Source of the DNA: Auanema rhodensis
Taxonomy: Eukaryota > Animalia > Nematoda
DNA: 64,000 nt
Direction: 5' to 3'
NCBI GenBank assembly: GCA_964057225.1
Contig: OZ059894.1
Coordinates: 17,174,001-17,238,000 of the forward strand
This document shows, piece by piece, positions 1,718 through 42,200 of this stretch. Position 1 is the stretch's first letter. Each line of letters starts with the position of its first letter. Position numbers and translations under genes: made by a program. The notes under the pieces were generated by a model. That model was not told the origin of the DNA. It saw only the letters and a list, made by a program, of their open reading frames with translations, and ran no database searches.

Positions 1718-2117
1718 GGCCACTGATTGCCCACAAGAACAAGCCACATCGAGCAGTTCGAGCTTTCCAAAGCATCAGCATTTCTTAAGAATTTACTGAT
1801 CTATCAGAGAGTTTACAGAACCATGTAATCCATAAGGCTTTTAAACGTATATCTGACTTAGTTTGAATTTGTTATTCGTTCCACTTCCATTTCTGAAAAG
1901 AAAATCTGTAATAATCGTACTTCTTCTAAATCTTTTCACTTCGGCTTTATAATCAAGCCAACACGACTACCTTCACAACTATTCTTTCCTGAATTTTCTT
2001 GTATTTTCAAAGAACTACACATACATATTTCCTTTCCTTTACAAAGATTTTCTCAATATTCTTTCCACTAATATTAATTTTCTAAAATATTTTCTTCTAG
2101 ACTTACTTTTCTTCAAC

Positions 2118-2994
2118 ATGCAATTCGTCATTGTCGCCCTTGCCCTTGTCGCTGGAAGCAACGCTTTCCTTTTCGGAGGTAGCGGATGCGGGTATGAAGC
2201 TTTCTTACCGTTTTTAGCAACTCACTTCGCTTATTTCAGAGGAGGATGCGGAGGATGCGGAGGAGGACTTTCACTTCCATCTCTTCCAGCTCTTCACCTT
2301 CCATCCCTTGGAGGAGGATGCGGAGGAGGATGCGGAGCTGCCCCAAGCCCATGTGGAGCCCCAGCCCCAGTTGCCGGTGGATGCGGAGCCGCCCCAGCTG
2401 CTTCTGGATGTGGAGGAGGGTACGAAATCCGCCTTATAAAATCTTCAAAACTGTACTGATATTTAGATTCGCTGCTCCAGCCCCAGCTCCAGTCTATAGC
2501 GCCCCAGTTCCAGCCCCAGCCCCAGTCTACAGCGCTCCAGCCCCAGCCCCAGTCTACAGCGCTCCAGCCCCAGCCCCAGTTTACAGCGCTCCAGCTCCAG
2601 CTCCAGTCTTCAGCGCTCCAGCCCCAGTTGCCGCTCCTGTATACACCCAACAAGTCTCTGCCCCAGTTGCCGCTCCAGTATACACCCAACAAGCCCCAGT
2701 AGCCGCTCCAGTATACGCCCCAGCTTCTGTTCAATCTGCTCCAGTCAGCTCTGGATTCGGAGGATACGCTTCTGCCCCAGTTGGAGCCGGAGCTGCCCCA
2801 CTCCCAGTTTCCGGAGGATACGCCGCCCCAGTCCAATCCACCTTCGCTGAATCAGTTATCGCCCCAGCCGCTGCTCCAGCTCCAGCTCCAGTCTACCAAC
2901 CAGCCGCTCAAGTCGCCGGAGGAGTAAGTTACCTAAATTGACTATCCTAACTATATTTCATAATTTTCAGAGCTACGTTGTCGGAAGAAAGTAA
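2118..2994 (+). CDS. Secreted Gly/Cys-rich + (APAPVYS)n Pro/Ala-rich structural protein (cuticle/eggshell-like), copy 1, 4 exons
   Basis: Signal peptide MQFVIVALALVAGSNA, GGCGG repeats, then APAPAPVYS repeats. Three short GT-AG introns join the ORF-track frames. Last exon SYVVGRK* at 2971-2994, with AATAAA about 45 nt downstream. Confidence 0.88.
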
Positions 2995-3569
2995 ATTTAC
3001 TTCATATTTCAAAGATTTATCCTATATGTACATTTCGTGAATAAACAGATTTTCACTTATTAATTTCTTAATTTACATTCAACGATCAACATGAAAAGCC
3101 TTGAAAATAATTTAAAAATGAACAATCACACTGAAATGACTTTGAATATTACAAGGATATTCAACATTTAATTCTCCTTATAAATTTTTATTTATTTTGA
3201 ACTTTTTAGTCAATTTATACATATTATGTTCAAAATTGACTAAAAAGTTCAAAATAAAGTTCAACATATCTTATTCAATATCTTGTTATTCCTTCAAAAA
3301 TAATCTGTCGAGTTTATAGATTTTTTCTTCATTGATCAAATTTAAATGAAAAAATTAGCATATGTTATATGTTCTATTCTTCTTGTAAAATTTATGTGAT
3401 CAGTTGGATTTGTTACACGTTCAACATCCCCATCTGTTTTGTACATTGCATAGTTTATAAACTTATTATGTGATTATATAGTTATTAGTTCTATATAAAT
3501 ATCGGTGAACAAGAAAACTGGCTAAGACGTTGCGTGGCATGATTGCTATAGATTAACGTAAGAGGAAGT

Positions 3570-4324: not shown

Positions 4325-6125
4325 ATGATACAGGACAATGTTCTGATTCAAAGTTTCAAAAAAATGACTTCCTTAGCAAAAATTCTGCTAGATCCATTTA
4401 TTCGGTATTGAACAAGCTAATCTTATAGAAAAAAAGAAGGCCTTCTACGAACTAGTGTCGCTTGGCGCCCCGAAACCTGCGTCAGGTTCCAGGTTCTTGC
4501 ATACGCCCTGCAAGTATATAAGGCCACTGATTGCCCACAAGAACAAGCCACATCGAGCAGTTCGAGCTTTCCAAAGCATCAGCATTTCTTAAGAATTTAC
4601 TGATCTATCAGAGAGTTTACAGAACCATGTAATCCATAAGGCTTTTAAACGTATATCTGACTTAGTTTGAATTTGTTATTCGTTCCACTTCCATTTCTGA
4701 AAAGAAAATCTGTAATAATCGTACTTCTTCTAAATCTTTTCACTTCGGCTTTATAATCAAGCCAACACGACTACCTTCACAACTATTCTTTCCTGAATTT
4801 TCTTGTATTTTCAAAGAACTACACATACATATTTCCTTTCCTTTACAAAGATTTTCTCAATATTCTTTCCACTAATATTAATTTTCTAAAATATTTTCTT
4901 CTAGACTTACTTTTCTTCAACATGCAATTCGTCATTGTCGCCCTTGCCCTTGTCGCTGGAAGCAACGCTTTCCTTTTCGGAGGTAGCGGATGCGGGTATG
5001 AAGCTTTCTTACCGTTTTTAGCAACTCACTTCGCTTATTTCAGAGGAGGATGCGGAGGATGCGGAGGAGGACTTTCACTTCCATCTCTTCCAGCTCTTCA
5101 CCTTCCATCCCTTGGAGGAGGATGCGGAGGAGGATGCGGAGCTGCCCCAAGCCCATGTGGAGCCCCAGCCCCAGTCGCCGGTGGATGCGGAGCCGCCCCA
5201 GCTGCTTCTGGATGTGGAGGAGGGTACGAAATCCGCCTTATAAAATCTTCAAAACTGTACTGATATTTAGATTCGCTGCTCCAGCCCCAGCTCCAGTCTA
5301 TAGCGCCCCAGTTCCAGCCCCAGCCCCAGTCTACAGCGCTCCAGCCCCAGCCCCAGTCTACAGCGCTCCAGCTCCAGCTCCAGTCTACAGCGCTCCAGCT
5401 CCAGCTCCAGTCTTCAGCGCTCCAGCTCCAGTAGCCGCTCCAGTATACACCCAACAAGTCTCTGCCCCAGTTGCCGCTCCAGTATACACCCAACAAGCCC
5501 CAGTAGCCGCTCCAGTATACGCCCCAGCTTCTGTTCAATCTGCTCCAGTCAGCTCTGGATTCGGAGGATACGCTTCTGCCCCAGTTGGAGCCGGAGCTGC
5601 CCCACTCCCAGTTTCCGGAGGATACGCCGCCCCAGTCCAATCCACCTTCGCTGAATCAGTTATCGCCCCAGCCGCTGCTCCAGCTCCAGCTCCAGTCTAC
5701 CAACCAGCCGCTCAAGTCGCCGGAGGAGTAAGTTACCTAAATTGACTATCCTAACTATATTTCATAATTTTCAGAGCTACGTTGTCGGAAGAAAGTAAAT
5801 TTACTTCATATTTCAAAGATTTATCCTATATGTACATTTCGTGAATAAACAGATTTTCACTTATTAATTTCTTAATTTACATTCAACGATCAACATGAAA
5901 AGCCTTGAAAATAATTTAAAAATGAACAATCACACTGAAATGACTTTGAATATTACAAGGATATTCAACATTTAATTCTCCTTATAAATTTTTATTTATT
6001 TTGAACTTTTTAGTCAATTTATACATATTATGTTCAAAATTGACTAAAAAGTTCAAAATAAAGTTCAACATATCTTATTCAATATCTTGTTATTCCTTCA
6101 AAAATAATCTGTCGAGTTTATAGAT
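4325..6125 (+). repeat. Tandem segmental duplication, copy 2
   Basis: Direct repeat of 1521-3321. Confidence 0.95.
4922..5798 (+). CDS. Secreted Gly/Cys-rich + (APAPVYS)n structural protein, copy 2
   Basis: Same exon structure and predicted protein as copy 1. Confidence 0.88.
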
Positions 6126-17705: not shown

Positions 17706-18748
17706 TCAGAAATATGGTCCATGAGCAGCATGAGCTCCACCGTGGGCTTGGTTGATCCATCCATTGTTATGTCCAGCTTGGTCTTGCTTTCCGTATCCGT
17801 ATCCGTACTTGGAAGCATCATACTCATTTCCGTATCCATTCTGAGAAGCAGCATTTTTGCCGTAGTGTGAATGTCCGTCAGCATGATCAGCGGAAGCAGC
17901 ATTGTATCCCTTCTTGTACCCGGAACCAGATCCGTCAGCGGAATGGCGAGATAAGGCGTTTTGGCGATCATAACCTTGAAAACATCTCAGATTTAATTTA
18001 TAATATAATAAGATATAAATTGCATAAGATATAAATCGAAATTATATAAACAGATAGAAGTAGAATATTGGTGCACTAACCCTCAGATCCATAATATCCT
18101 TTGGAGTAGCTTCCTTCAGGCCCAGATCCAGAAGTGAAATAAGAGTATTTCTTCATACCCTCAGCATCTACAATTGTTTGAATGATAATTGGCTTTCAAA
18201 ACATTTAAATCGAATTAATGACTTATTCGAGGGTGCGTAAGGGCTTCTTAAGTACTCCTTTCAAGACACCTTAATAGTCTCGAAAGAAGAAAAGGGTCCA
18301 AATGTAATGAAGAAATGGCAGAGAAACTAACCAGCGGCATTACGAGCCCCTTCATCGTGATGAGCATCATCGTATCCCTCAGAAGCTCCGTTGTTGTAGT
18401 CCGAATGTCCATCAGCATATCCATTAGAGCCTTAATAATATAAATGATAAGAACTATTTTTTGCTATTTTTTGATCCGGACCATAATTTCCTGCATTATA
18501 TCCTTGGTGACCAGCAGCTCTATCATAATTAGCTCCATCGTATCCGTAACCATACCCAGCTAAGGATCCATAGTAATCGTCATTGCTTTTACCCTGTATA
18601 AGGATTGAAGATGTGTTTCAAGAAAAATTGAAGTAATTACATATTTGGAATGATGATCACCATGATCATCATATCCTCCATAATAAGGAGGGAGGTAGCT
18701 TGCAGCAGCAACAGCAACAATGCAGGAAATGGCAAGGAAACGAGACAT
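17706..18748 (-). CDS. Secreted Gly/Tyr/His/Asp-rich low-complexity protein (cuticular/structural-like), 5 exons
   Basis: MSRFLAISCIVAVAAASYLPPYYGGYDDHGDHHSKY|GKSNDDYYGS...|...GYDDAHHDEGARNAA|DAEGMKKYSYFTSGSGPEGSYSKGYYGSE|GYDRQ...HGGAHAAHGPYF*. GT-AG introns, and TATATAAA on the minus strand near 18940. Confidence 0.85.
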
Positions 18749-18754
18749 GTCTAG

Positions 18755-18757
<3 letters not shown>

Positions 18758-18808
<51 letters not shown>
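18758..18808. repeat. (TA)n microsatellite, about 25 units
   Basis: Uninterrupted TA run directly upstream of the acceptor that precedes the ATG of the minus-strand His-rich gene. Confidence 0.95.
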
Positions 18809-18812
<4 letters not shown>

Positions 18813-19650
18813 TATGATTCGAAAAGAGAAATTCAAATACACTTAAGTATGAATCTTCACAAGTAAATGTTAATCAAAAGAAAGAATTAAAGAATATAAA
18901 TGATTGATGAAGTGATGTATTTGTTGGAATCATGCTTGGTTTATATACTGACTGAAGTAAGTCAGGAATGTATGTTAGTACGTGGATCGCCTCATTGATC
19001 AGCAATTTTTTTGAATCGAAACAACTATTATGTAGTATTATGTAGTGGCTTCCTCCTGTCATTCTTCGAACTTTTTTATAAAAATAATAGTATTAGAAAA
19101 AAGTAGATTTATCTAACTATGCTGCCTTGAAATTCACTACTTCTGATTCGCTTTTTATGTTTTTAATTCTTGTCATATAGTACAATATGAATGCAATAAT
19201 ATTAGTTATTACGAAATAAATAAATATATATATATATATATTTATACTTTATACTTTATATACATAAGTATAATGATAATCTCATGTTTTCCTTAAAATC
19301 ACATATTTTTGATTTTCGTGTGAAAAGTATTATTAGCCTTTTCTTTCAAACTTTAGATCTTATTGCAGTTAATGAATTTCAGAAAAAAAACTTTAATTCC
19401 TCAGCGTTTCCTCTTAGTTTAAACAATAGAGAAAACAACATCCTTGACAGCATCATCATCACCATCCAATTTCAGAAGAGGAGAAGCCAATCAGCTTTGC
19501 ACGTCCCAAGTAAATTGGAACCTCTCCTAACCACTAATCTTTTTCCTTCTAAAACTTGCCGGCTGCTTCGCCATGAACGTTTTCCCTCATTGTTGTTACT
19601 CACACTAATAAAATCCTTTATTGATATTTTAATTTAAAATCTATTCAGAC

Positions 19651-22600
19651 ATGCATTTTTCTGGTATTTGGTTTTTTATTTTAATAATTGCCATTGAATC
19701 ATTGGACTTGACCCCGAAATCACTGCGAAAACCTTTACTTACAGCTAAACGAGTCAATAAACAAAATATTACCATTGGATTAGTTTATCAAGTTTATAAA
19801 TAAAAATTTATATGCCCTGTAATTTAAAATTTTACAGCATTACGCTAACCGATCGAAAGCTTACGAGAAGGCTTTTAAAGAAATTATCAGAAAAATAAAT
19901 GAAGGAACTGCCGTTTCGTGAGTTCATTCCAAATATCTTCTTTTTTTTTCAAATCGAATTCATTTTGTAGATCATTGAGACGTTTACCAGAACGATTTAA
20001 TTTTACCGGAGTTGATTGCATTCTACCAACTGGAGTGTTCTATGTTCGCGAAGTCATCGATTGCATCTGTAATCGTTTAGTAGAAAATCAGGTGTGTGTT
20101 AAACTAGGGACTCAAACCTAACAACAAAAAAGAATCATCAGTTAATTTTATTAAAGGTTTCTTTGATAATTTTTGCAACTGCTTCCGAGACATATGATTC
20201 AACAACTGCAGCCGAACAGTACTTTCTCACTATGGCCAGTTATACTGGTATACCCGTACTTGCATGGAATGCTGATAATTCTGGGTTTTCATTTGAAAAA
20301 GTTTACTCATAAATAATAATAACAAGGTTAACTTAATTTATTTCGATTTTCAGAATCTATCCTCTTATCGAATTCTTCAAATGGCTCCACCAATCGAGCA
20401 TCAAATACGGTTATACTTCTTATTGATCTCAATGATTTTTCTTTATTTAGTGCTATGATAGCTTTACTTCAACGATATAATTGGTCGAAATTTGGAATTG
20501 TGACATCTGATATGGCTGGATCCGAGCAATTTATCAAAAGTGTTCGAGAAGAAATAGCTGATGCTAGTAATAAATCTGCTAAGTAGATTTGTTGCTTAAT
20601 TTTTATTTTTTGAATTGTTATATTACAGATTTGAAATAATGTTTCATTGTCACTTACAAGTAAATAACTCAACAGATGTTTCGCTAAAGCTTCAAGATCT
20701 TAAACAAAGTCAAGCGAAAATAATTTTACTTTATTCAACTGCTGCTCAAGCTCGACTCATATTTGAGGTAAATGTGTAATTATATTCAATGTTTATATTC
20801 AATTAATATAATATAGCAAGCAATTCCTCTTGGTTTAACGAATGACAAATACTTATGGGTTGGAACACAATCAGTAAAAGGTACACAGACTTCGGTGACA
20901 GGAGAATATCAACCTGGAATGTTGAGTGTTAACTTTCACACAGGTAAAAAGCGCTTTTTATAATAAAATGTTTTCGAATTTCAAGTTTCAAACGCAATGT
21001 TTGCTCCCAGAGATGATATAATTCCACTAATTATACAATTAGCGCCTAAGGTGAGACAATAATCTCAATTTGTGAAAAAAAATTTTCAAATTTTTAGCTT
21101 TTTGGAGCGGCTTTACAGCAGGTCCCATCGAATATAACCGATTCTGTGCGTTCAAATTCTTCTTGCAAAAGAAATGTTGAGTCTAGCTGGGCAAATGGGG
21201 AATATATCTACAAGTATGACATAAAGAAAAATATTTTGAAAAAAGCTGGTAACAGGTTGATGAGACAATCATTCGTGAAAGGAAATCCTTTTCACGTTGA
21301 TGATGGATATGATTCGTTTTTCTATGTTTTCAATAAGAATGGACGATTGAGAAATTCAGTATTACAAATTTCAAATTTGCGAAGAAATAATAAAGGAACT
21401 TTATACTGGGATAGAGTATGTTTGATGTTATTTTTTGTGATCGGATTTATATCGATAATGTTTTTTTGGGTGGGAACTTTTATTAGTAATGAATTAAAAA
21501 TGGCAGATGTTGAGTGGCCAGGTGGTCGAGCAAATCCTCCAATGGGAACTGCAGACAAATTTCACGTGAAAGTAGGTTAAGATTTAGTTAAAAATCATTG
21601 AAGACTATATTGCAGGTTGTAACACTACATGAACCTCCATTCATAACAGTTTCTGATATAGATCCAGACACTGGCCGATGCCCAGGAAATCAAGGATCAA
21701 TATGCGATTGGGGAGATGTTGAAATTGAAGACGAGTCAGGCAACAGAAGGTAAAACTGTAACATATGATAAATAAGTTAAAAGCTTTAGAAATGAAACAT
21801 TGTGGAAATGCTGCTCTGGATACTGCGTTGACTTATTGAACAAGTTAGCAAGTGATATAGGATTTACCTATACCTTGTATAAAGTTCGAGATGAAAAATG
21901 GGGTTTAAAAACAGTATGTTCATGACAGTTTCACATATTTAATCTATCCGAATCTAATCCAAATTAGGAACATGGGTGGAATGGATTGATTGCAGATCTG
22001 ATAAACAACAAAGCTGACATGTGTGTCACCTCATTAAAGTTAAACTCTGAGAGAGCAAGAGATATTGATTTCTCTTTACCTTTCTTAGAAACAGGAATTG
22101 CAATAATCGTCAAAATTCGTAGTGGAGTACTAAGTCCCACAGCATTTCTTGGTAAGAAAATTAATCAAAAATTTTAAAAAATGTTGATTTTTTTTTAATT
22201 TGATTCTTACTTATTGATAATGTCAGTTACGGACCTCAAAATATGATTTATTTTTAAAATTTAAAACGTGGGCCGAGCCGGGGATCGATCCCGGGACCTC
22301 TCGCACCCTAAGCGAGAATCATACCACTAGACCACTCGGCCTGAAGTTCCTTGGCAACCATGTTCAAGCCTTGCTGATACCGTTTCAAGTTCGAATTAGT
22401 TTTATATTAAGCTTTTGTTTCGTTCCGGGTTCTATATAACAAACAAAACATTACTTTTAAATGATATGAAAAGAATCAATCCAATAGAGAAAATATTCAA
22501 TGCATATAGACAAAACTGATAAGAAAGGTGTTGGGAATCGCTGATATTCTTTAAACCATTATATTACATTTTAAGAGAAAATTTTAGAAGAATGAAACGG

Positions 22601-24773
22601 AGAAAACAATTGTTTTCAAGTTCTAACAACCTTATATTTTCGGATTGTATATGCTTATCAATGTTCAGAGCCATTTGAGTACTCCACGTGGGTTATTATT
22701 CTTTTTGTAAGCATACAAGGTGCTGCATTCTCAATTTTCATATTTGAATGGGTTTCACCATATTCTTTTAATATGCAAAAATATCCACCGCCTGGTCAGT
22801 TTTTTCATATATAATTTTTTTTAGACTACTATTCTAGATCACAAGTTTTCATTGTGTAGATCGTTTTGGTTAGTTTGGGCTACATTGTTCAGTGCTAGTG
22901 TTTCTACTGGTTTGTTGTATCTGTATTCATTATATGTTTTGTGATTTTATATGTACCAAAAAGCTCTGTTTCGAGATTCATGGCTCTTGTTTGGGCAGCT
23001 TTTGGATTGACATTTTTGGCTGTCTATACAGCAAACCTTGCTGCTTTCATGATAACTAGAGTACAATTTTACGATCTGAGTGGTATACATGATTCTATGG
23101 TAAGGTCGAGTACGTAGGTATAGTATATCCTATCCCCTTCCTTTAGTTAAGCCCACCCATAGCCAAGTAAATGCTATAGCGCCTACATTGCTTACTTTTT
23201 GACATCTTTTAAAGCAACATTCTTTTGGAACAAATTTTGCTTGCTAACTCAAGTTGAGCATTTCGTGACCCACATAATTAGCATATGATGTAAAAATAAC
23301 TTTTTCCAAAAAGGCCGTCATATTTCTAGGCTTGAAAAACAGTTTCTTACTTCAAAAATCTTACATTAAAGATCACAAACAAGTAATTGTAATAGTTTTT
23401 AACATAAATTTGATAGATCTTTATTTCTCATAGGTGCCAAGATCCAAATTAATAGGTTTCTAAAGGTTCAGTATGCCTTCAGTAAAAGGTTGTGCTTTCG
23501 ATGAGCCACACTTTTATATTTAAAGAATTTAGTCTTATTGTTATGGTTTGTTGTATTTACAAGCAGGGCTTCCATAATCAAATATTTCATTTAAATCTAA
23601 ATCTAAACTATGAGTCATAAGGCTCTCAGAAAAAATGAACTTTGTGATTTTAGTTGACTTATCCGGCTGATCAAAATCCTCCATTTCGTTATGGAACTGT
23701 TGATGGGGGCAATACTCATGAGACCATGAAACGTAATTGGCAACAAATGCATGATTACGTGAAGAAAAATAATTTTTTTCGAATGAATATTTCTGCTGGA
23801 GTCGATGCTGTTAGAAATGAGTTCTTGTTTTTTTTTGCAATTCATAGTTATTATTGTTATTCAAGAGAACTAGATGCTTTTATATATGATGCCGTTGTCT
23901 TGGACTATTGGGCAGGAAAAGATGCCAATTGTGAACTTATGATGGTTTTTTAAAATACTGTTTGAATATTAATTAATCTCTCTATATTAGGTTGGAAAAT
24001 GGGCAAGTATGACAGGATATGGCATTGGTTTTCCTAAAAATTCTCCATATACTGCGATGGTTAATCAATATATGCTACAATATCAACAAAAAGGTGAAAA
24101 TTTACATTAACCAATTATATTAGTGTCTTTTCAGGTGATCTGGAACGCCTACAAAATTTCTGGTTAACGGGTGCTTGTTCACCGGATAGTCATGGGCAAA
24201 CTCATTCAGCACCACTGGGAGTTGAAAATTTTCTGTCAGCTTTTTTTTTATTAGCAGGAGGAATTGTAATATTCATATATTTTTCTTGAAACAATTATAA
24301 AATTTAGATTATGGCAATGATTGTTTTAGGGTGTGAATATATTTATTGTAGACATATCAGAATGCCTCTTCAAAGGTTAGATCCAAATGGCTGGTGTGGC
24401 ATTATCAGTATGGTTAGTTTCGAATGTTTCTTGTGTTTTCTAATATATGTATATCTGAATAATTATGAATAAACAACAGTTTTAATTAAACAAAATAATA
24501 TATTCGAAATTGAAAATAAAATATAATTATAGTCAATGGGAAAGTCTTTAACACTACCAGAAGCTGTTGATCGGGTGCAAGAATGGAGATCACGAACACA
24601 ATCATTAGCGAGTAATACATCTCCGATTCCGAGAAGAAAACACTTAGGATCGTAAGAAATATTCATGTAGAACTACTCAAAGGTTGTATTTCAGAACAAT
24701 ATTCAAACCTAAAATTTTAATAGAACAGCCTAATGCTAAGAGACAATTCCTCCAAGTTGAAAGTAATCTGTGA
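19651..24773 (+). CDS. nmr-2: NMDA-type ionotropic glutamate receptor subunit, GluN2/NR2 class; about 25 exons
   Basis: Spliced translation includes [12 protein letters not shown] (ATD), [19 protein letters not shown] and [31 protein letters not shown] (S1). It continues with M1-M3 ([30 protein letters not shown]), S2 ([32 protein letters not shown]), M4, and a PDZ-ligand-like end QVESNL*. Two acceptors lack AG (see findings). Confidence 0.92.
22270..22341 (-). tRNA. tRNA-Pro(AGG), intronic in nmr-2, antisense
   Basis: GGCCGAGTGGTCTAGTGGTATGATTCTCGCTTAGGGTGCGAGAGGTCCCGGGATCGATCCCCGGCTCGGCCC, identical to the array consensus tRNA, followed by ACGTTTT. Confidence 0.95.
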
Positions 24774-25045
24774 AAAGAATCTGATGCTAAGTATATTATA
24801 AACATCTTTCTGTATCTTTGTTAAGCTTCAAAACGATTATTGAAATGGTGTAGTCACGCATTGTTTTCACTGTTTGTTCTCCTCTCTACTTTATTCTCTC
24901 CCAGAATCTCCTCCTCTTTTCTCGTCTTCTCACTTCTGGCTTCTCTGTGGCACAATGAGCATAATTGATCGAACGCTACATGTCCCCAAGTTTTAAGTTT
25001 TAAACTTGTAATATTACATTTAAATATCATATTCGTAAGATTACA

Positions 25046-25190
25046 TACTTGTCCATAATTATTTTTAACTGAATATTATTAACCTAATATCTATAGGTGA
25101 ACACTCAAGCTTAAAATTAATTGAATTTCAAGAGAACTGCAACTATATACTAAGAAGAAGTACACTTCTCGAAACAAAATATTAAAACGT
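25046..25190 (-). repeat. Solitary inverted copy of the array spacer (tRNA 3' flank)
   Basis: Reverse complement of ACGTTTTAACATTTTGTTTCGAGAAGTGTACTTC...CAGTTAAAAATAATTATGGAAAAGTA with a few mismatches, then unique sequence. Confidence 0.9.
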
Positions 25191-26220
25191 GGGCCGAGCC
25201 GGGGATCGATCCCGGGACCTCTCGCACCCTAAGCGAGAATCATACCACTAGACCACTCGGCCTGAAGTTCCTTGGCAACCATGTTCAAGCCTTGCTGATA
25301 CCGTTTCAAGTTCGAATTAGTTTTATATTAAGCTTTTGTTTCGTTCCGGGTTCTATATAACAAACAAAACATTACTTTTAAATGATATGAAAAGAATCAA
25401 TCCAATAGAGAAAATATTCAATGCATATAGACAAAACTGATAAGAAAGGTGTTGGGAATCGCTGATATTCTTTAAACCATTATATTACATTTTAAGAGAA
25501 AATTTTAGAAGAATGAAACGGAGAAAACAATTGTTTTCAAGTTCTAACAACCTTATATTTTCGGATTGTATATGCTTATCAATGTTCAGAGCCATTTGAG
25601 TACTCCACGTGGGTTATTATTCTTTTTGTAAGCATACAAGGTGCTGCATTCTCAATTTTCATATTTGAATGGGTTTCACCATATTCTTTTAATATGCAAA
25701 AATATCCACCGCCTGGTCAGTTTTTTCATATATAATTTTTTTTAGACTACTATTCTAGATCACAAGTTTTCATTGTGTAGATCGTTTTGGTTAGTTTGGG
25801 CTACATTGTTCAGTGCTAGTGTTTCTACTGGTTTGTTGTATCTGTATTCATTATATGTTTTGTGATTTTATATGTACCAAAAAGCTCTGTTTCGAGATTC
25901 ATGGCTCTTGTTTGGGCAGCTTTTGGATTGACATTTTTGGCTGTCTATACAGCAAACCTTGCTGCTTTCATGATAACTAGAGTACAATTTTACGATCTGA
26001 GTGGTATACATGATTCTATGGTAAGGTCGAGTACGTAGGTATAGTATATCCTATCCCCTTCCTTTAGTTAAGCCCACCCATAGCCAAGTAAATGCTATAG
26101 CGCCTACATTGCTTACTTTTTGACATCTTTTAAAGCAACATTCTTTTGGAACAAATTTTGCTTGCTAACTCAAGTTGAGCATTTCGTGACCCACATAATT
26201 AGCATATGATGTAAAAATAA
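25182..26220 (+). pseudogene. nmr-2: Partial duplicate of nmr-2 (22261-23299): tRNA-containing intron plus three exons encoding M1-M2-M3
   Basis: 1039-bp direct repeat at offset 2921, identical as far as read by eye. It lies downstream of the nmr-2 stop codon and lacks the other exons. Confidence 0.9.
25191..25262 (-). tRNA. tRNA-Pro(AGG) with chimeric flanks
   Basis: Identical 72-nt gene whose 3' flank is the array spacer and whose 5' flank is nmr-2 intron sequence. Confidence 0.93.
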
Positions 26221-26455
26221 TACACAGAACTTAGGTAATGAAATGTGTAGAATCTGAATATAGAATTAATATTTGGCTATGATCCATCTGTTTTCCGGAA
26301 AAAGGGTTTATACCGAGCCCATTCATAATAATGTTCACAAAATAAGTTTAGGTTGTGCACACGATGGGATCAGTAAATCCAACTTTATATTTATTCGACT
26401 GTAAGCTATATTGTTTACATTGACCTCACGTTACAAAAAAAAAATTTTTTTTTTG

Positions 26456-27634
26456 AATAGGGTAATAAGACCGTGGGAAAGGCGGGCTTTAAGTATTGGC
26501 GGGAACCGGGTTCTCAAGTCAATTCTATCAGTAAAACACTTCATATTTTTGTTTCGAGCCTCACGGTTGGTCGCTATGGCCCCTGCTCGCACTACCAAGA
26601 AGGGACAAGCCCCTGATCATGAGCCTGCCCCGAAAAGAGGCCGCTCATCCGTCTCGATCTCATCAGACGGCTCTTTGGAATCTTCACGACGTGATGGCCG
26701 TCTCACACCTACGGACTCAACCTAAGGCGATCACTCGGTAAACTCCCATGAAGAACTCGATCAAGTTCGACATGACTCCTCGGACGAGGACGACTTCGTG
26801 TCCATGCCACCAGAATCTCAAGGACCTAGAACCAGGCCTGTAGTCCGCCTCTCCGGTTCCGAACTTGCCGACTTTGAGCGTCTTGCCTCCGGTTGCTCCA
26901 TGACGCACACCGAAAGAGCCGACATCTTATCTGAGCTTCCAATACTCGATTCTCCATTCGCCCGTCTACCATGCCTGGATGAGAAATACACCACCCACGT
27001 GGATAGCTCAGTCAAGCCATCAGTGAAGATCAGCGAGGCTGACATCAGGGCCTCTTACGAGAACACGCTCAATGCGCTCGCCGGCCTACGGATCATCAGG
27101 AAACTTGCGAAAATCGATAACAAGTCTCCGCTTTCCTCCAAACAACAGGCATACATCAACGTGACAGAAAGATTCCTCAGCGCCAATATCAAGACGGATT
27201 ATACTCACCTCAGAGAGATCGCACTTCTTGAAATGAAGTACTCTCAGCCCATCAAGGCTATGCCTATTAATCTTTATTCTCAGGACTCAGTCCCGGAACT
27301 CTTCGAAAAGAAGCTAAGGGCAGAACTCTCGGCTTTCTCAGAACTCTCTAGAAACTCAAGAACCAATTCAAGTTCACGAGATCATCAACGTCCGTCATCG
27401 AACCAACGATCGGGACCATCAACACAACCCACCCACAAGGCTAACTCCTATAGCAGGTGCGTCCATTTTCGAGCAGGTGCTCTTTCGTCCCACCAAGACT
27501 TTTGGGGTTCCCTCTCTAAAGACCAGGATATCTTTCAGACGGTAAAAGGCTACCGCCTCCCTTTCGCAGGGAGTTAACCTAAGCGCCTTCTGTCAAATCT
27601 GACATCGTTACCGCAATCCCTTAGGTTTTATTAC
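26456..27634 (+). mobile_element. Truncated DIRS/PAT-type (tyrosine-recombinase) retrotransposon: gag-like ORF running into the N-terminus of RT
   Basis: Higher-GC island. The frame from ATG 26576 (MAPARTTKK...) continues through one in-frame TAA at 26723-26725 into the 26798-27577 ORF. That ORF ends AGALSSHQDFWGSLSKDQDIFQTVKGYRLPF, matching the AGRL..F...W..IT.D..IL..V.GY.IPF signature at the start of DIRS RT domains. Cut off by the array; left boundary approximate. Confidence 0.65.
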
Positions 27635-30909: not shown

Positions 30910-31246
30910 CGTTTCATTCGGAAATCAATACGTAGCAGGCGGGTTAGAATTAGACGACATGAGGCTGAGAGAGGACGACACGCCCTTCATATGGAACACA
31001 GACTTCAGCTTTGCCTTATGGAATGACTATGGATGGTTGGTCTTCCTTTCTTAGCTCTCTTTCACTTTATATCTTTATGTAGACTTATATAACTTATTGT
31101 AATCATGTAGACATAATAAACCTTTCTTTCTCGAGTCTTATGTTTATCCATTATGCTCTTTATCTACCGCTACATCTGGAATACTATCACACTCATCTTG
31201 TAGGCTTTATTGGTCTATAGGATCGACGTGAGAGCATAACGGAACG
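30910..31246 (+). repeat. 5' LTR, copy 1
   Basis: CGTTTC...GGAACG ends, with internal TATATAA (31086) and AATAAA (31115). Confidence 0.92.
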
Positions 31247-31259
31247 TGGAGGTTCCACC
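31247..31259 (+). promoter_or_regulatory. Primer-binding site complementary to the tRNA-Gln 3' end (copy 2 at 36308-36320)
   Basis: TGGAGGTTCCACC is the reverse complement of GGTGGAACCT-CCA, the 3' end of metazoan cytosolic tRNA-Gln as I recall it. Confidence 0.8.
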
Positions 31260-33900
31260 TCGAACATATTTTGATTTCTTGACTATTTTCTCTTATATTT
31301 CGTTATTTTCACTACAATTCATTGAATCTGAATTCTCTTATATCTCTAAACCATCTACTCCATGTCTTAACACAATACGGTGGGGCCAACAACGTTTAAA
31401 AGGGAACAGATGCAAGGACCACTCCTTTTGGAGATGGATATTTTAAATTTTTTGAAACTGAAGTTATATTTTCCCGGTTGTTCACAATTTTCTGTCTGTC
31501 TGAACTCAACAATTTTTATATCCTTGCTGTTAACATCGAATACTCTGTTACCCGAACTCGAAGCATTTTTTGAGGACCCTAGGATGAATTAGTGAACAAA
31601 TTCACCCAAGGATAATTTTTTTTTTGAGATTTATGCCCACACTTTCTCCTTTTAAGGATTGATTTGGCTTCGAGGAAAGAATAGCCACGGTTATTTCTTT
31701 ATTTTTGTGGATGAAACAATTTTGTGCACCAAATAGAGTTTATTTCATATTTTGCGATCAGGACTATTTTATTTTGCGTTACATTTCTGTTCAGACAACT
31801 TTTTGCCATTAACATCCAAAAATATTTTGATAACGCATTGAATTTACACGGGAAACCTCACCTAAATAGGAGGAATATTATGAAAAGTGAATTTTAAGAT
31901 CGCTATAGTCCGAAAAATCCTGTACAATTTTACGAACTGAATTATTATTAGTGATTGTCTATCAGGTCGGGTTGGCTTAAGCATATCAGTTTGGATTTTC
32001 TCCCCTTACTATATGTCACCTTCCTCATACCGTTATTGTTGTTTTGAAGCATAAGACTCATTCCTAAACACCATAATTCTTTAAAAATAGTTATTGTAAT
32101 TTTTAGTCATCTATTCCTAGCCATAATTCTAAAACTAGATTTCTGATCATGATGGGACTACGGTACTTATTCGTTTTCCAAATTGCTTCCTTAAAGAGTA
32201 ATGCTATTACGAATGTACATTATGAAAACCGCTAAAATCCTTTGAACATTTACCAAAGTCCATTTTCGTGGCATTTTCGATCACTCGTGAGTCCAAGAAG
32301 ATCAGAATCGTCAGAAAAAGAAAAAAAAATGGGAATAAGGACTAATGAGATTGCTCAGGCATCAATCAAGTGAGCACTGAACATTTTTTGAACATATACA
32401 AACTGGTTGAATTATATACATTTAAGAATATTAAATTGGAAAGCGAACAAAGTCCAAATTTTCATACGGTAGTAGGCGGATCTCTGTTGATGGCCACAAC
32501 TCAGATTCATTCCTTAACGCCGACTATACAAACCAGTTACTCACAGCTTTCTCACCTCTTTTCCAAAATTCCTTATCCATAACACTCATTAACGTCTCAA
32601 AATCCCCCACGTTACTAAACACTCAAGGTTTTTCCAAACCAAGAGCGCTACCAAAGTGGATAAGCGATTCCGATCAGCTGTACCTCTCAGTACACGAACT
32701 GATTTTGATCTGCGAGACTCAGCTCCACTCACCAGAAGCCGAGCTCGCGCGCAGAGCATCGCTATAATCGAAGACGAGCAGAAAGCCGAGCACAGAACCG
32801 ACAAATTCTTTACTCCTCGTGCAGGCACTTATTCACCTACTGAACGATTAAGCGACGAGGATTACGTACCACCAGGAGGAGAAGAAACATCCATCTTAGT
32901 GGAAGAACAAACACCAGTTACTGCTAAAAAGTCATCAACGTTGAAGGAAACATGGTACAACTCAAGAATCCATTTGGAAAAATTCAAGACGTACACAAAG
33001 ACAATCTCAAACTTTTGCGATCAAATACAACGACTTATGACACGGACGACGACAGTAATATTGAGATCATAAAAGTCATAAATGGTAACGATAACTATGA
33101 CTCTACTGAAGAAACAGAACCAGAAGACCCATCGGACCAAAGTTGGCTACCACCAAGAAGAAGACGATGAAAGAAATAATTTCGAGATTGATAAAATTAT
33201 TGTAAAACTTTGTATCAACTCTCTTTTAAAAAACCAGAGCTATTAATATTATTATATCATTGAAAAACTTGAGTAAGACGAGATGTAAGCTAATAATCAA
33301 AAAGCATTTCAGTTTCAAAGCATATATGATTATAAAACTTCAATTTTTCAAAAAAAAAAAAAAAAAAAAAAAAAACATCAATTTCAAATAATTTCCCGTA
33401 AATAAAGAAGAAATGAAAGATAAGAGACATTATATAGCATATTCATCTGAGCAACAGTCCTTATCAAGTAGTTAATGATTCAATTCCGGAAATTATATGG
33501 GATTTAATTTTATTTTTTTATTATTACAATTCGCTTTGAATACGCTGAAGAAACATGCTAGCTCCATCGAAAATATAGCATGACTCTCGTTTCTCTATAC
33601 TCAAAGAAGTTAGACATGCAGCGTCGTGCATAAAGAGCTATTTCGCGCACATTCGCTGACAAAATATAGCCCTGGTATTCTAAAAGGTTCTTTTATTACT
33701 TAATATTCATGTATTTTCAAATATTTTTTATTAAATTCTTTTCAGATAAAATTGTTTAACATTATATTGTAATTTATCTTTACTATTTTTATGTTAACAT
33801 TGTAATTTTTATTTTTTAAATCTAAACCTTCTGCTACGATTGAAACAAGCCACATATTTTGCTATTCGCGAGGACGCGACATAAACTCGAAAAAATGGCA

Positions 33901-34237
33901 CGTTCCATTCGGAAATCAATACGTAGCAGGCGGGTTAGAATTAGACGACATGAGGCTGAGAGAGGACGACACGCCTTTCATATGGAACACAGACTTCAGC
34001 TTTGCCTTATGGAATGACTATGGATGGTTGGTCTTCCTTTCTTAGCTCTCTTTCACTATATATCTTTATGTAGACTTATATAACTTATTGTAATCATGTA
34101 GACATAATAAACCTTTCTTTCTCGAGTCTTATGTTTATCCATTATGCTCTTTATCTACCGCAACATCTGGAATACTATCACACTCATCTTGTAGGCTTTA
34201 TTGGTCTATAGGATCGACGTGAGAGCATAACGGAACG
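33901..34237 (+). repeat. 3' LTR, copy 1
   Basis: CGTTCC...GGAACG perfect 6-bp inverted ends, preceded by a weak purine-rich tract GAAAAAATGG. Confidence 0.92.
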
Positions 34238-35970
34238 TAGTTGAAGTTCTCTTGAAATTCAATTAATTTTAAGCTTGAGTGTTCACCTATAGATATCAGA
34301 TTAATAATATTCAGTTAAAAATAATTATGGAAACGTAGAAGGTTCATCGTAGTGAATGGATATTTCAGGCCGAGTGGTCTAGTGGTATGATTCTCGCTTA
34401 GGGTGCGAGAGGTCCCGGGATCGATCCCCGGCTCGGCCCACGTTTTAACATTTTGTTTCGAGAACTGTACTTCTTCTTTGTATTTAGTTGAAGTTCTCTT
34501 GAAATTCAATTAATGTTGAGCTTTAGTATTCACCTATAGATATCAGATTAATAATATGTAGTTAACAATAATTATGGAAAAGTAGAAGGTTCATCGTAGT
34601 GAATGGATAGTTCAGGCCGAGTGGTCTAGTGGTATGATTCTCGCTTAGGGTGCGAGAGGTCCCGGGATCGATCCCCGGCTCGGCCCACGTTTTAACATTT
34701 TGTTTCGAGAAGTGTACTTCTTCTTAGTATTTAATGGAAGTTCTCTTGAAATTCAATTAATTTTAAGCTTGAGTGTTCACCTATAGATATCAGATTAATA
34801 ATATGTAGTTAACAATAATTATGGAAAAGTAGAAGGTTCATCGTAGTGAATAGATAGTTCAGGCCGAGTGGTCTAGTGGTATGATTCTCGCTTAGGGTGC
34901 GAGAGGTCCCGGGATCGATCCCCGGCTCGGCCCACGTTTTAACATTTTGTTTCGAGAACTGTACTTCTTCTTTGTATTTAAGTGAAGTTCTCTTGAAATT
35001 CAATTAATGTTGAGCTTTAGTATTCACCTATAGATATCAGATTAATAATATTCAGTTAAAAATAATCATGGAAAAGTAGGAGGTTCATCGTAGTGAATGG
35101 ATATTTCAGGCCGAGTGGTCTAGTGGTATGATTCTCGCTTAGGGTGCGAGAGGTCCCGGGGTCGATCCCCGGCTCGGCCCACGTTTTAACATTTTGTTTC
35201 GAGAAGTGTACTTCTTCTTCGTATTTAGTTGAAGTTCTCTTGAAATTCAATTAATGTTGAGCTTTAGTATTCACCTATAGATATCAGATTAATAATATTC
35301 AGTTAAAAATAATCATGGAAAAGTAGGAGGTTCATCGTAGTGAATGGATATTTCAGGCCGAGTGGTCTAGTGGTATGATTCTCGCTTAGGGTGCGAGAGG
35401 TCCCGGGATCGATCCCCGGCTCGGCCCACGTTTTAACATTTTGTTTCGAGAACTGTACTTCTTCTTTGTATTTAAGTGAAGTTCTCTTGAAATTCAATTA
35501 ATGTTGAGCTTTAGTATTCACCTATAGATATCAGATTAATAATATTCAGTTAAAAATAATCATGGAAAAGTAGGAGGTTCATCGTAGTGAATGGATATTT
35601 CAGGCCGAGTGGTCTAGTGGTATGATTCTCGCTTAGGGTGCGAGAGGTCCCGGGGTCGATCCCCGGCTCGGCCCACGTTTTAACATTTTGTTTCGAGAAG
35701 TGTACTTCTTCTTCGTATTTAGTTGTAGTTCTCTTGAAATTCATTTAATTTTAAGCTTGAGTGTTCACCTATAGATATCAGATTAATAATATTCAGTTAA
35801 AAAAAACTATGGAAAAGTAGAAGGTTCATCGTAATAAATGGATATTTCAGGCCGAGTGGTCTAGTGGTATGATTCTCGCTTAGGGTGCGAGAGGTCCCGG
35901 GATCGATCCCCGGCTCGGCCCACGTTTTAACATTTTGTTTCGAGAAGTGTACTTCTTCTTCGTATTTAGT

Positions 35971-38900
35971 CGTTTCATTCGGAAATCAATACGTAGCAGG
36001 CGGGTTAGAGTTAGACGACATGAGGCTGAGAGAGGACGACACGCCCTTCATATGGAACACAGACTTCAGCTTTGCCTTATGGAATGACTATGGATGGTTG
36101 GTCTTCCTTTCTTAGCTCTCTTTCACTATATATCTTTATGTAGACTTATATAACTTATTGTAATCATGTAGACATAATAAACCTTTCTTTCTCGAGTCTT
36201 ATGTTTATCCATTATGCTCTTTATCTACCGCTACATCTGGAATACTATCACACTCATCTTGTAGGCTTTATTGGTCTATAGGATCGACGTGAGAGCATAA
36301 CGGAACGTGGAGGTTCCACCTCGAACATATTTTGATTTCTTGACTATTTTCTCTTATATTTCGTTATTTTCACTACAATTCATTGAATCTGAATTCTCTT
36401 ATATCTCTAAACCATCTACTCCATGTCTTAACACAATACGGTGGGGCCAACAACGTTTAAAAGGGAACAGATGCAAGGACCACTCCTTTTGGAGATGGAT
36501 ATTTTAAATTTTTTGAAACTGAAGTTATATTTTCCCGGTTGTTCACAATTTTCTGTCTGTCTGAACTCAACAATTTTTATATCCTTGCTGTTAACATCGA
36601 ATACTCTGTTACCCGAACTCGAAGCATTTTTTGAGGACCCTAGGATGAATTAGTGAACAAATTCACCCAAGGATAATTTTTTTTTTGAGATTCATGCCCA
36701 CACTTTCTCCTTTTAAGGATTGATTTGGCTTCGAGGAAAGAATAGCCACGGTTATTTCTTTATTTTTGTGGATGAAACAATTTTGTGCACCAAATAGAGT
36801 TTATTTCATATTTTGCGATCAGGACTATTTTATTTTGCGTTACATTTCTGTTCAGACAACTTTTTGCCATTAACATCCAAAAATATTTTGATAACGCATT
36901 GAATTTACACGGGAAACCTCACCTAAATAGGAGGAATATTATGAAAAGTGAATTTTAAGATCGCTATAGTCCGAAAAATCCTGTACAATTTTACGAACTG
37001 AATTATTATTAGTGATTGTCTATCAGGTCGGGTTGGCTTAAGCATATCAGTTTGGATTTTCTCCCCTTACTATATGTCACCTTCCTCATACCGTTATTGT
37101 TGTTTTGAAGCATAAGACTCATTCCTAAACACCATAATTCTTTAAAAATAGTTATTGTAATTTTTAGTCATCTATTCCTAGCCATAATTCTAAAACTAGA
37201 TTTCTGATCATGATGGGACTACGGTACTCATTCGTTTTCCAAATTGCTTCCTTAAAGAGTAATGCTATTACGAATGTACATTATGAAAACCGCTAAAATC
37301 CTTTGAACATTTACCAAAGTCCATTTTCGTGGCATTTTCGATCACTCGTGAGTCCAAGAAGATCAGAATCGTCAGAAAAAGAAAAAAAAATGGGAATAAG
37401 GACTAATGAGATTGCTCAGGCATCAATCAAGTGAGCACTGAACATTTTTTGAACATATACAAACTGGTTGAATTATATACATTTAAGAATATTAAATTGG
37501 AAAGCGAACAAAGTCCAAATTTTCATACGGTAGTAGGCGGATCTCTGTTGATGGCCACAACTCAGATTCATTCCTTAACGCCGACTATACAAACCAGTTA
37601 CTCACAGCTTTCTCACCTCTTTTCCAAAATTCCTTATCCATAACACTCATTAACGTCTCAAAATCCCCCACGTTACTAAACACTCAAGGTTTTTCCAAAC
37701 CAAGAGCGCTACCAAAGTGGATAAGCGATTCCGATCAGCTGTACCTCTCAGTACACGAACTGATTTTGATCTGCGAGACTCAGCTCCACTCACCAGAAGC
37801 CGAGCTCGCGCGCAGAGCATCGCTATAATCGAAGACGAGCAGAAAGCCGAGCACAGAACCGACAAATTCTTTACTCCTCGTGCAGGCACTTATTCACCTA
37901 CTGAACGATTAAGCGACGAGGATTACGTACCACCAGGAGGAGAAGAAACATCCATCTTAGTGGAAGAACAAACACCAGTTACTGCTAAAAAGTCATCAAC
38001 GTTGAAGGAAACATGGTACAACTCAAGAATCCATTTGGAAAAATTCAAGACGTACACAAAGACAATCTCAAACTTTTGCGATCAAATACAACGACTTATG
38101 ACACGGACGACGACAGTAATATTGAGATCATAAAAGTCATAAATGGTAACGATAACTATGACTCTACTGAAGAAACAGAACCAGAAGACCCATCGGACCA
38201 AAGTTGGCTACCACCAAGAAGAAGACGATGAAAGAAATAATTTCGAGATTGATAAAATTATTGTAAAACTTTGTATCAACTCTCTTTTAAAAAACCAGAG
38301 CTATTAATATTATTATATCATTGAAAAACTTGAGTAAGACGAGATGTAAGCTAATAATCAAAAAGCATTTCAGTTTCAAAGCATATATGATTATAAAACT
38401 TCAATTTTTCAAAAAAAAAAAAAAAAAAAAAAAAAACATCAATTTCAAATAATTTCCCGTAAATAAAGAAGAAATGAAAGATAAGAGACATTATATAGCA
38501 TATTCATCTGAGCAACAGTCCTTATCAAGTAGTTAATGATTCAATTCCGGAAATTATATGGGATTTAATTTTATTTTTTTATTATTACAATTCGCTTTGA
38601 ATACGCTGAAGAAACATGCTAGCTCCATCGAAAATATAGCATGACTCTCGTTTCTCTATACTCAAAGAAGTTAGACATGCAGCGTCGTGCATAAAGAGCT
38701 ATTTCGCGCACATTCGCTGACAAAATATAGCCCTGGTATTCTAAAAGGTTCTTTTATTACTTAATATTCATGTATTTTCAAATATTTTTTATTAAATTCT
38801 TTTCAGATAAAATTGTTTAACATTATATTGTAATTTATCTTTACTATTTTTATGTTAACATTGTAATTTTTATTTTTTAAATCTAAACCTTCTGCTACGA

Positions 38901-39298
38901 TTGAAACAAGCCACATATTTTGCTATTCGCGAGGACGCGACATAAACTCGAAAAAATGGCACGTTCCATTCGGAAATCAATACGTAGCAGGCGGGTTAGA
39001 ATTAGACGACATGAGGCTGAGAGAGGACGACACGCCTTTCATATGGAACACAGACTTCAGCTTTGCCTTATGGAATGACTATGGATGGTTGGTCTTCCTT
39101 TCTTAGCTCTCTTTCACTATATATCTTTATGTAGACTTATATAACTTATTGTAATCATGTAGACATAATAAACCTTTCTTTCTCGAGTCTTATGTTTATC
39201 CATTATGCTCTTTATCTACCGCAACATCTGGAATACTATCACACTCATCTTGTAGGCTTTATTGGTCTATAGGATCGACGTGAGAGCATAACGGAACG
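35971..39298 (+). mobile_element. Non-autonomous LTR retroelement, copy 2 (LTRs 35971-36307 and 38962-39298)
   Basis: Near-identical to copy 1 at offset 5061, with the same TSD and the same position within the unit. Confidence 0.92.
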
Positions 39299-42200
39299 TA
39301 GTTGAAGTTCTCTTGAAATTCAATTAATTTTAAGCTTGAGTGTTCATCTATAGATATCAGATTAATAATATTCAGTTAAAAATAATCATGGAAAATTAGG
39401 AGGTTCATCGTAGTGAATGGATATTTCAGGCCGAGTGGTCTAGTGGTATGATTCTCGCTTAGGGTGCGAGAGGTCCCGGGATCGATCCCCGGCTCGGCCC
39501 ACGTTTTAACATTTTTTTTCGAGAAGTGTACTTCTTCTTCGTATTTAGTTGAAGTTCTCTTGAAATTCATTTAATTTTAAGCTTGAGTGTTCACCTATAG
39601 ATATCAGATTAATAATATTCAGTTAAAAATAATCATGGAAAATTAGGAGGTTCATCGTAGTGAATGGATATTTCAGGCCGAGTGATCTAGTGGTATGATT
39701 CTCGCTTAGGGTGCGAGAGGTCCCGGGATCGATCCCCGGCTTGGCCCACATTTTAACATTTTGTTTCGAGAAGTGTACTTCTTCTTCGTATTTAGTGGAA
39801 GTTCTCTTGAAATTCAATTGATGTTGAGCTTTAGTATTCACCTATAGATATCAGATTAATAATATTCAGTTAAAAATATATATAGAAAAAAAGGAGGTTC
39901 ATCGTAGTGAATGGATATTTCAGGCCGAGTGATCTAGTGGTATGATTCTCGCATAGGGTGCGAGAGGATATCAGATTAATAATATTCAGTTAAAAATAAT
40001 TATGGAAAAGTAGGAGGTTCATCGTAGTGAATGGATATTTCAGGCCGAGTGGTCTAGTGGTATGATTCTCGCTTAGGGTGCGAGAGGTCCCGGGATCGAT
40101 CCCCGGCTCGGCCCACGTTTTAACATTTTGTTTCGAGAAGTGTACTTCTTCATCGTATTTAGTTTAAGTTCTCTTGAAATTCAATTAATTTTAAGCTTGA
40201 GTGTTCACCTATAGATATCAGATTAATAATATTCAGTTAAAAATATATGTATATGGAAAAGTAGAAGGTTCATCGTAGTGAATGGATATTTCAGGCCGAG
40301 TGGTCTAGTGGTATGATTCTCGCTTAGGGTGCGAGAGGATATCAGATTAATAATATTCAGTTAAAAATAATTATGGAAAAGTAGGAGGTTCATCGTAGTG
40401 AATGGATATTTCAGGCCGAGTGGTCTAGTGGTATGATTCTCGCTTAGGGTGCGAGAGGTCCCGGGATCGATCCCCGGCTCGGCCCACATTTTAACATTTT
40501 GTTTCGAGAACTGTACTTCTTCTTCGTATTTAGTGGAAGTTCTCTTGAAATTCAATTGATGTTGAGCTTTAGTATTCACCTATAGATATCAGATTAATAA
40601 TATTCAGTTAAAAATATATGTATATGGAAAAGTAGAAGGTTCATCGTAGTGAATGGATATTTCAGGCCGAGTGGTCTAGTGGTATGATTCTCGCTTAGGG
40701 TGCGAGAGGATATCAGATTAATAATATTCAGTTAAAAATAATTATGGAAAAGTAGGAGGTTCATCGTAGTGAATGGATATTTCAGGCCGAGTGGTCTAGT
40801 GGTATGATTCTCGCTTAGGGTGCGAGAGGTCCCGGGATCGATCCCCGGCTCGGCCCACGTTTTAACATTTTGTTTCGAGAAGTGTACTTCTTCTTAGTAT
40901 CTAGTGGAAGTTCTCTTGAAGTTCAATTAATTTTAAGCTTTAGTATTCACCTCTAGATATCAGATTAATAATATTCAGTTAAAAATATATATGGAAAAGT
41001 AGAAGGTTCATCGTAGTGAATGGATATTTCAGGCCGAGTGGTCTAGTGGTATGATTCTCGCTTAGGGTGCGAGAGGTCCCGGGATCGATCCCCGGCTCGG
41101 CCCACGTTTTAACATTTTGTTTCGAGAAGTGTACTTCTTCTTAGTATCTAGTGGAAGTTCTCTTGAAGTTCAATTAATTTCAAGCTTTAGTATTCACCTA
41201 TAGATTTCAGATTAATAATATTCAGTTAAAAATAAACATGGAAAAGTAGGAGGTTCATCGTAGTGAATGGATATTTCAGGCCGAGTGGTCTAGTGGTATG
41301 ATTCTCGCTTAGGGTGCGAGAGGTCCCGGGATCGATCCCCGGCTCGGCCCACGTTTTAACATTTTGTTTCGAGAAGTGTACTTCTTCTTTGTATTCAGTT
41401 GAAGTTCTCTTGAAATTCAATTAATGTTGAGCTTTAGTATTCACCTATAGATATCAGATTAATAATATTCAGTTAAAAATAATTATGGAAAAGTAGGAGG
41501 TTCATCGTAGTGAATGGATATTTTAGGCCGAGTGGTCTAGTGGTATGATTCTCGCTTAGGGTGCGAGAGGTCCCGGGATCGATCCCCGGCTCGGCCCACG
41601 TTTTAACATTTTGTTTCGAGAAGTGTACTTCTTCTTAGTATTTAGTGGAAGTTCTCTTGAAATTCAATTAATTTTAACCTTGAGTGTTCACCTATAGATA
41701 TCAGATTAATAATATTCAGTTGAAAATAATTATGTAAAAGTAGAAGGTTCATCGTAGTGAATGGATATTTCAGGCCGAGTGGTCTAGTGGTATGATTCTC
41801 GCTTAGGGTGCGAGAGGTCCCGGGATCGATCCCCGGCTCGGCCCACGTTTTAACATTTTGTTTCGAGAAGTGTACTTCTTCTTAGTATCTAGTGGAAGTT
41901 CTCTTGAAGTTCAATTAATTTCAAGCTTTAGTATTCACCTATAGATATCAGATTAATAATATTCAGTTAAAAATAAACATGGAAAAGTAGGAGGTTCATC
42001 GTAGTGAATGGATATTTCAGGCCGAGTGGTCTAGTGGTATGATTCTCGCTTAGGGTGCGAGAGGTCCCGGGATCGATCCCCGGCTCGGCCCACGTTTTAA
42101 CATTTTGTTTCGAGAAGTGTACTTCTTCTTTGTATTCAGTTGAAGTTCTCTTGAAATTCAATTAATGTTGAGCTTTAGTATTCACCTATAGATATCAGAT

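Follow-up and report, generated by a model that had tools for sequence, protein, structure and literature searches.

A solitary tRNA-Pro(AGG) unit and a perfect copy of receptor exons at the left edge of a tRNA array complex in Auanema rhodensis

The receptor gene, its exon copy and the tRNA array

A 64,000-nucleotide stretch of the Auanema rhodensis genome (C1:17174001-17238000, the window) carries the 3′ end of a glutamate receptor gene and, beyond it, the beginning of a large tandem array of tRNA-Pro(AGG) genes. Between the two lies a solitary array-type unit, joined to a perfect copy of receptor exons, and this unit is the subject of the present analysis. The region analysed consists of the window and 160 kb around it (224 kb in total), with positions past 64000 given as window equivalents, and genome-wide searches for further copies covered the 181-Mb, 112-contig assembly. 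The tandem tRNA arrays of this genome are known in outline from a study of the Auanema rhodense germline genome, which reports 19,554 tRNA loci and tandem tRNA blocks (bioRxiv 10.64898/2026.08.27.747507); the accessible part of that preprint contains no description of this locus, of the array edges or of the exon copy.

ARAGORN identified 111 tRNA genes in the window, with plus-strand array calls from 27832 on, and Tandem Repeats Finder gave an array unit of 247 bp. In the unit coordinates used here, the tRNA occupies phases 1-72, the 3′ spacer phases 73-216 and the 31 bases ahead of the next tRNA phases 217-247. The plus-strand tRNA-Pro(AGG) array starts at 27635, at position 51 of a tRNA, and runs through 64000 and on to 115816, where the orientation flips. 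Minus-strand units then reach 128279, small blocks follow to the right, and the final units (153998-154500) are again on the minus strand. The whole complex occupies 129 kb (25046-154500), reaches well past the window and is interrupted by several long terminal repeat (LTR) elements. It is flanked on the left by the 3′ end of the receptor gene and on the right by a unique segment, designated X, and both of its outermost units, at 25.1 kb and 154.5 kb, are in minus orientation. A genome-wide search found the spacer family at no other locus.

The receptor gene was classified from its individual exons, which were searched one by one rather than as a joined, spliced protein. Reading frames were used to place exons M1 (22668-22796), M2 (22837-22911) and M3 (22962-23099). 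M1 and M3 match Pfam Lig_chan, and the exon ahead of the preceding intron matches Lig_chan-Glu_bd, the glutamate-binding S1 lobe. The top solved relatives of the exons are GluN2 chains of the N-methyl-D-aspartate (NMDA) receptor, namely GluN2B, 2C and 2D. By these matches the host is a predicted GluN2-type, nmr-2-like NMDA receptor subunit gene. Inside it, in the intron ahead of M1, ARAGORN places a minus-strand tRNA-Pro(AGG) gene at 22270-22341.

The segment that was copied (22261-23299, plus strand) comprises the trailer of this intronic tRNA gene, the tRNA itself, the rest of the intron, exons M1-M3 and 200 bp of the next intron. It recurs in register at 25182-26220, at an offset of 2921, with 1039 of 1039 bases identical, a repeat that cannot be due to chance. 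The first-pass annotation of this DNA had reported a 1039-bp copy as the 5′ flank of the second tRNA gene. The copy itself is as described; 9 of its 1039 bases are trailer and 72 are tRNA, which leaves 958 bp as the 5′ flank proper (25263-26220, plus strand). This flank is a perfect intron and M1-M3 copy, with the exons at 25589-25717, 25758-25832 and 25883-26020, and is a gene fragment with neither upstream nor downstream exons. Beyond the 1039-bp block, no further copy of 18500-24620 was found in the genome, and 23300-24586 has no second copy anywhere in it.

The solitary unit at the left edge of the array

The tRNA gene of the solitary unit lies at 25191-25262 on the minus strand (ARAGORN) and, as had been noted before, is identical to the intronic gene 2,921 bp away and has the same orientation. 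The earlier observation that its 3′ flank is array spacer was also confirmed: 25046-25190 (minus strand) is an inverted array spacer running from phase 217 to phase 73, and 25046-25266 is 96% complementary to array units. The unit covers phase 217 down to phase 1 plus 4 bases and so has the 3′ spacer in full, as far as the AAGTA point. Array-type sequence gives way to intron-type sequence somewhere in 25182-25266. The DNA beyond the spacer had been described as unique, a description that does not hold, as 24587-25033 (segment c) has a 99.1% identical inverted copy 144 kb away. The 12 bases between segment c and the spacer (25034-25045) resemble neither the paralog of segment c nor the array.

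The relationship of the solitary spacer to those of the array was examined in an alignment of 281 full-length spacers, in which no outgroup was included. The solitary spacer carries six private substitutions, the most of any of the 281 (the runner-up has three, and 256 lack any). It carries the majority allele at 37 of 40 polymorphic columns and, at the other three, common alleles present at 33-39%. Its nearest neighbour is 8 differences away; 211 of the 281 spacers have an identical twin. In a FastTree tree, it forms the longest terminal branch, with a weakly supported attachment that is away from the midpoint root.

Nesting of this spacer inside a young array subfamily would have marked the unit as a derived escapee. 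It is not so nested, as its private branch is the longest in the tree and its state is near the consensus. Because six private substitutions are combined with an otherwise near-consensus spacer, the solitary unit is not a young escapee, and since both outermost units of the complex are in minus orientation, it is best described as the left terminal unit. A fold-back of the adjacent first plus-strand unit was considered as a source and rejected: the two are 15 differences apart and have none of the six private changes in common, which argues against a recent event of this kind.

Long isolation is the usual picture for units at the edges of arrays. Like the diverged edge monomers of satellite arrays, this terminal unit is the most isolated of the 281 spacers. 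It differs from them in that the array consists of RNA polymerase III (Pol III) genes, gene sequence has taken the place of the unit's 5′ half, and most of the array runs in the opposite orientation to its edge.

Junctions of the exon copy and outer edges of the complex

On the left, the exon copy has its junction somewhere in an 85-base block (25182-25266) that comprises the tRNA with 9 bases of trailer and 4 of leader and is identical both to 22261-22345 and to the array. Because the junction falls inside the identical block, it appears to have been homology-driven. The right junction, at 26220/26221, is a non-homologous join with 2 bases of exact microhomology to a satellite monomer. This monomer (26221-26383, plus strand) is a single diverged copy of a ~200-bp satellite, 79-82% identical to arrays at 14.6 and 15.9 Mb on C1 and at 14.7 Mb on C4. 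Next to it lies a DIRS-like retroelement (26384-27622, plus strand), of which 1.24 kb at the 5′ end remain; this fragment retains an inverted terminal repeat and the first open reading frame, is internally truncated and has 95-99% identity to at least 10 copies. A 12-base filler (27623-27634) separates the truncated retroelement from the array.

Full-length copies of the retroelement are 4.4 kb long, with 163-bp inverted ends, an RVT_1 domain and a tyrosine recombinase (Phage_integrase in the copy at C6:15.89 Mb), and on such a full-length relative the element is assigned to the predicted DIRS-like tyrosine-recombinase class. All four full-length copies examined (C6:15.89, C4:13.62, C1:3.14 and C6:4.71 Mb) lie within tandem satellites with periods of ~200 bp or more, suggesting that the element prefers satellite DNA or survives there. 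Transposon insertion was rejected as the event that made the right edge of the exon copy: the retroelement lies 163 bp further on, behind the satellite monomer, and is itself truncated.

The duplication of the exons had been attributed to unequal crossover between the two tRNA genes. Part of this proposal agrees with the junctions. As in non-allelic homologous recombination between dispersed tRNA genes, the left junction lies in an 85-base identity between co-oriented tRNAs 2.9 kb apart. Such a crossover, however, predicts a tandem copy of the full 2,921-bp interval, whereas only 1,039 bp were duplicated and the second junction is non-homologous, so that an additional deletion would be needed. 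The locus also resembles the products of templated insertion, whether by break-induced replication, synthesis-dependent annealing with template switching, or fork stalling and template switching/microhomology-mediated break-induced replication (FoSTeS/MMBIR). Common to these are a short stretch copied perfectly from a nearby template, one homologous junction and one with ~2 bases of microhomology, 12-base fillers at neighbouring junctions (25034-25045 and 27623-27634), and a patchwork of unrelated fragments. It is unlike them in that the mechanism here is read from junction anatomy alone.

The outer edges of the complex were delimited by a second duplication. On the left, segment c (24587-25033, plus strand) consists of the 3′ end of the receptor gene and downstream DNA, and its inverted copy lies at 169060-169506. 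Homology stops at 25033, 12 bases short of the spacer, while the inverted copy runs on into other DNA. On the right, segment X (3,990 bp) begins at 154504, 3 bases past the right edge of the array. An inverted copy of X, with 99.975% identity, is found 11 kb to its right (169510-173499), where it adjoins the inverted copy of segment c with few bases between them. X was considered as a transposable element and rejected, since apart from its own inverted copy no other copy exists in the genome. The copied c and X are thereby joined at their distal ends. On C1, the interval from the start of X to the end of its inverted copy (154504-173499) is 17328504-17347499.

Both outer edges are marked as real structural boundaries by this independent, inverted duplication of the flanking DNA, which stops 12 bases short of the array on the left and 3 bases short of it on the right. 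The adjacencies of c and X fit two readings alike, namely a templated inverted insertion beside an existing array, or an inversion with duplicated breakpoints; under either reading, the array edges are rearrangement hot spots. Segment c also provides a comparison for the exon copy, which has no differences over 1,039 bp, as against 4 in 447 for c, and this suggests that the exon copy is young.

The two outer edges fall at phases 217 (left) and 170 (right), which overlap by 48 bases rather than being adjacent, so that no more than one can represent the primary boundary of a founder. The right edge is probably the secondary one, because phases 170-182 also hold LTR insertions and other breaks. 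LTR elements or a solo LTR are present in the array at 30910-34238, 35971-39299, 77795-80486, 116057-120226, 144283-144620 and 144706-152408. Most of these insertions are at phases 175-182, which places them ~70 bp ahead of the following tRNA; they have 4-bp target duplications and look like site-specific integration upstream of Pol III genes. More breakpoints gather at phases 170-182, among them the 115.8-kb flip, the start of a 120-bp sub-repeat and the right outer edge itself.

The flip at 115641-116056 is head-to-head, passing from plus-strand phase 105 to minus-strand phase 172 with a 3-base overlap and an 88% palindrome, and is a fold-back type junction. A single simple inversion within a minus-strand array was rejected, as the flip phases (105 and 172) are unpaired with those of the left junctions.

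Origin of the array and competing explanations

Evidence bearing on where the array arose comes from the trailers of the tRNA-Pro(AGG) genes. The trailer ACGTTTTAA is confined to the array, its solitary unit and the intronic gene. Elsewhere in the genome, four dispersed tRNA-Pro(AGG) genes match the same 72 bases throughout but each carry the trailer CAACTTTT, and the trailer of a neighbouring tRNA-Pro(TGG) gene differs again. The dispersed copies (C1:10529712, C1:17154625, C5:14540491 and C7:4963683) are on three chromosomes, and outside the 8-base trailer CAACTTTT their flanks are unrelated. Because ACGTTTTAA is common to the intronic gene and the array family only, the founder of the array appears akin to the intronic gene, although the trailer is a modest feature; the comparison suggests that the two are kin and that the array was born at this locus in a broad sense. 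It does not single out the solitary unit as the founder. A source for the spacer was sought in nearby DNA (the flanks of c, X, the 11-kb segment, DNA past the inverted copy and the intronic tRNA), and none of the matches was significant, with a best p of ~0.015 in 11 tests.

With moderate confidence, we interpret the solitary unit as the old, diverged left terminal unit of one rearranged array complex, later fused to the exon copy by one-ended, homology-primed break repair. A relative of the intronic tRNA probably gave rise to the array at this locus. The exon copy would be a much later event, in which the DNA broke immediately 5′ of the terminal tRNA, the broken end invaded the identical intronic tRNA 2.9 kb away, and about 1 kb of intron and exons M1-M3 was copied. 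The new end may have been joined without homology to the satellite monomer and the DIRS-like fragment, which were either already beside the inverted bulk of the array or captured. We favour a one-ended event because it accounts for the exon-copy data in a single step. The order of events and the repair mechanism are proposed from the anatomy of the junctions.

Several points weigh against this interpretation. A crossover followed by a deletion yields the same end state, and the junctions are known from the assembly sequence alone. The spacer tree is unrooted and poorly resolved, with supports mostly below 0.85. Fast mutation is reported for the DNA flanking active tRNA genes, and the six private changes could therefore have accumulated in a short time. 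Ongoing gene conversion between close direct repeats, rather than youth, could be the source of the identity between the exon copies. Lastly, the full history of the complex has been only partly reconstructed, and the phases of the 115.8-kb flip fit no single inversion.

The first-pass annotation had instead proposed that the 25.1-kb unit is the ancestral single-copy gene, that its flank was captured into the 247-bp unit, that a crossover between the tRNAs duplicated the pore exons, and that the array was amplified in inverted orientation nearby. Several observations agree with this model. The solitary spacer is isolated, near consensus and outside any young subfamily; the left junction of the exon copy is within the tRNA block; the array family is limited to this locus and has its trailer in common with the intronic gene; and homology to array units stops at one point, beside DNA whose paralog ends 12 bases away. 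A founder, however, should pass into unique DNA on both sides, and the solitary unit retains the 3′ flank only, its 5′ side being receptor intron from 4 bases upstream of the tRNA. The position at which spacer passes into upstream flank is defined by the solitary unit alone, which makes the argument from it circular. The far outer edge, with its equal orientation and overlapping phase (170 vs. 217), fits a terminal unit better, and the short exon copy with its non-homologous end calls for the extra deletion described above. Nor does the array look like a fresh inverted amplification 2.4 kb from its source: its first tRNA begins only at position 51 and is preceded by a filler and a truncated retroelement, and the array returns to the minus strand at 115.8 kb. 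We therefore regard the identification of the solitary unit as the ancestral gene as unlikely.

A broader version of the founder idea would hold that the locus preserves the birth of a Pol III gene satellite. A short copy of the intronic tRNA-Pro(AGG) would have served as repair filler immediately downstream of the receptor gene, the solitary unit would be the founder that survives from it, the exon copy would be a second and recent instance of the same tRNA-primed copying, and tRNA arrays would start and grow by repeated homology-primed repair synthesis at their edges. This scenario seems to us doubtful.

Alternatively, an inversion of ~15 kb could have left inverted duplicates of the segments at its breakpoints, c and X, with the array seeded at, or inserted into, the repair junction and not present between c and X at the outset. 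With the array removed, the layout is gene, c, X, an 11-kb unique segment, inverted c and inverted X, which is the pattern left by a staggered-break inversion, and the position of the array coincides exactly with the c/X boundary, between 25033, where c ends, and 154504, where X begins. A filler templated by the intronic tRNA 2.7 kb away would also explain the shared trailer and orientation. The copies of c, however, differ at 4 of 447 positions and those of X at ~1 of 3,990, so that an equal age would require conversion between the X arms. In addition, the outer edges span 1.19 units, which implies that any insert was a repeat by the time it arrived, and the genome has no other array that could have donated it. 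Equal adjacencies would follow if c and X had been inserted, templated and inverted, next to a pre-existing array, and we judge the inversion account improbable.

An assembly artefact, in which the exon copy or its junctions would be a chimeric join in a highly repetitive region, is very improbable: 100% identity over 1,039 bp can result from a mis-join or from over-polishing, and the copy is made of four unrelated fragments at the edge of a long array, but single long reads easily span a 1-kb repeat with copies 2.9 kb apart, the 224 kb examined contain zero N, other junctions of the complex have a similar filler-and-truncation style, and the assembly is probably the HiFi and Hi-C assembly that is described in the accessible part of bioRxiv 10.64898/2026.08.27.747507.

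Taken together, the feature is a genuine scar of rearrangement at the edge of the array, but a fairly unremarkable one whose parts fit known processes. It adds no new mechanism and leaves the birthplace of the array unproven. What it does illustrate is that the terminal unit of a large tRNA array escapes homogenisation, that repair synthesis can land on nearby identical tRNA genes and copy exons of a neighbouring neuronal gene, and that both flanks of the array have been drawn into other inverted duplications. The locus is thus useful for understanding the origin of tRNA-gene satellites, and the way they reshape the genes around them, in a genome that has ~19,500 tRNA loci.

Three further observations concern the region at large. 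No telomere-seeded palindrome was seen in a scan of the DNA that separates the gene from the array, with the limit that the motif scanned may differ from the true one. Away from the array, a direct duplication of 1.8 kb (1521-3321 and 4325-6125, 99.6% identity) contains GC-rich, coding-like repeats of 27-39 bp (GCTCCAGCCCCAGC...). Within the array, units at 50299, 53015, 56967, 60672 and 63883 carry variant anticodons and are called by ARAGORN as tRNA-Asn(ATT) or tRNA-Ser(AGA); they are spaced at multiples of the unit length, consistent with higher-order repeats bearing mutant copies.

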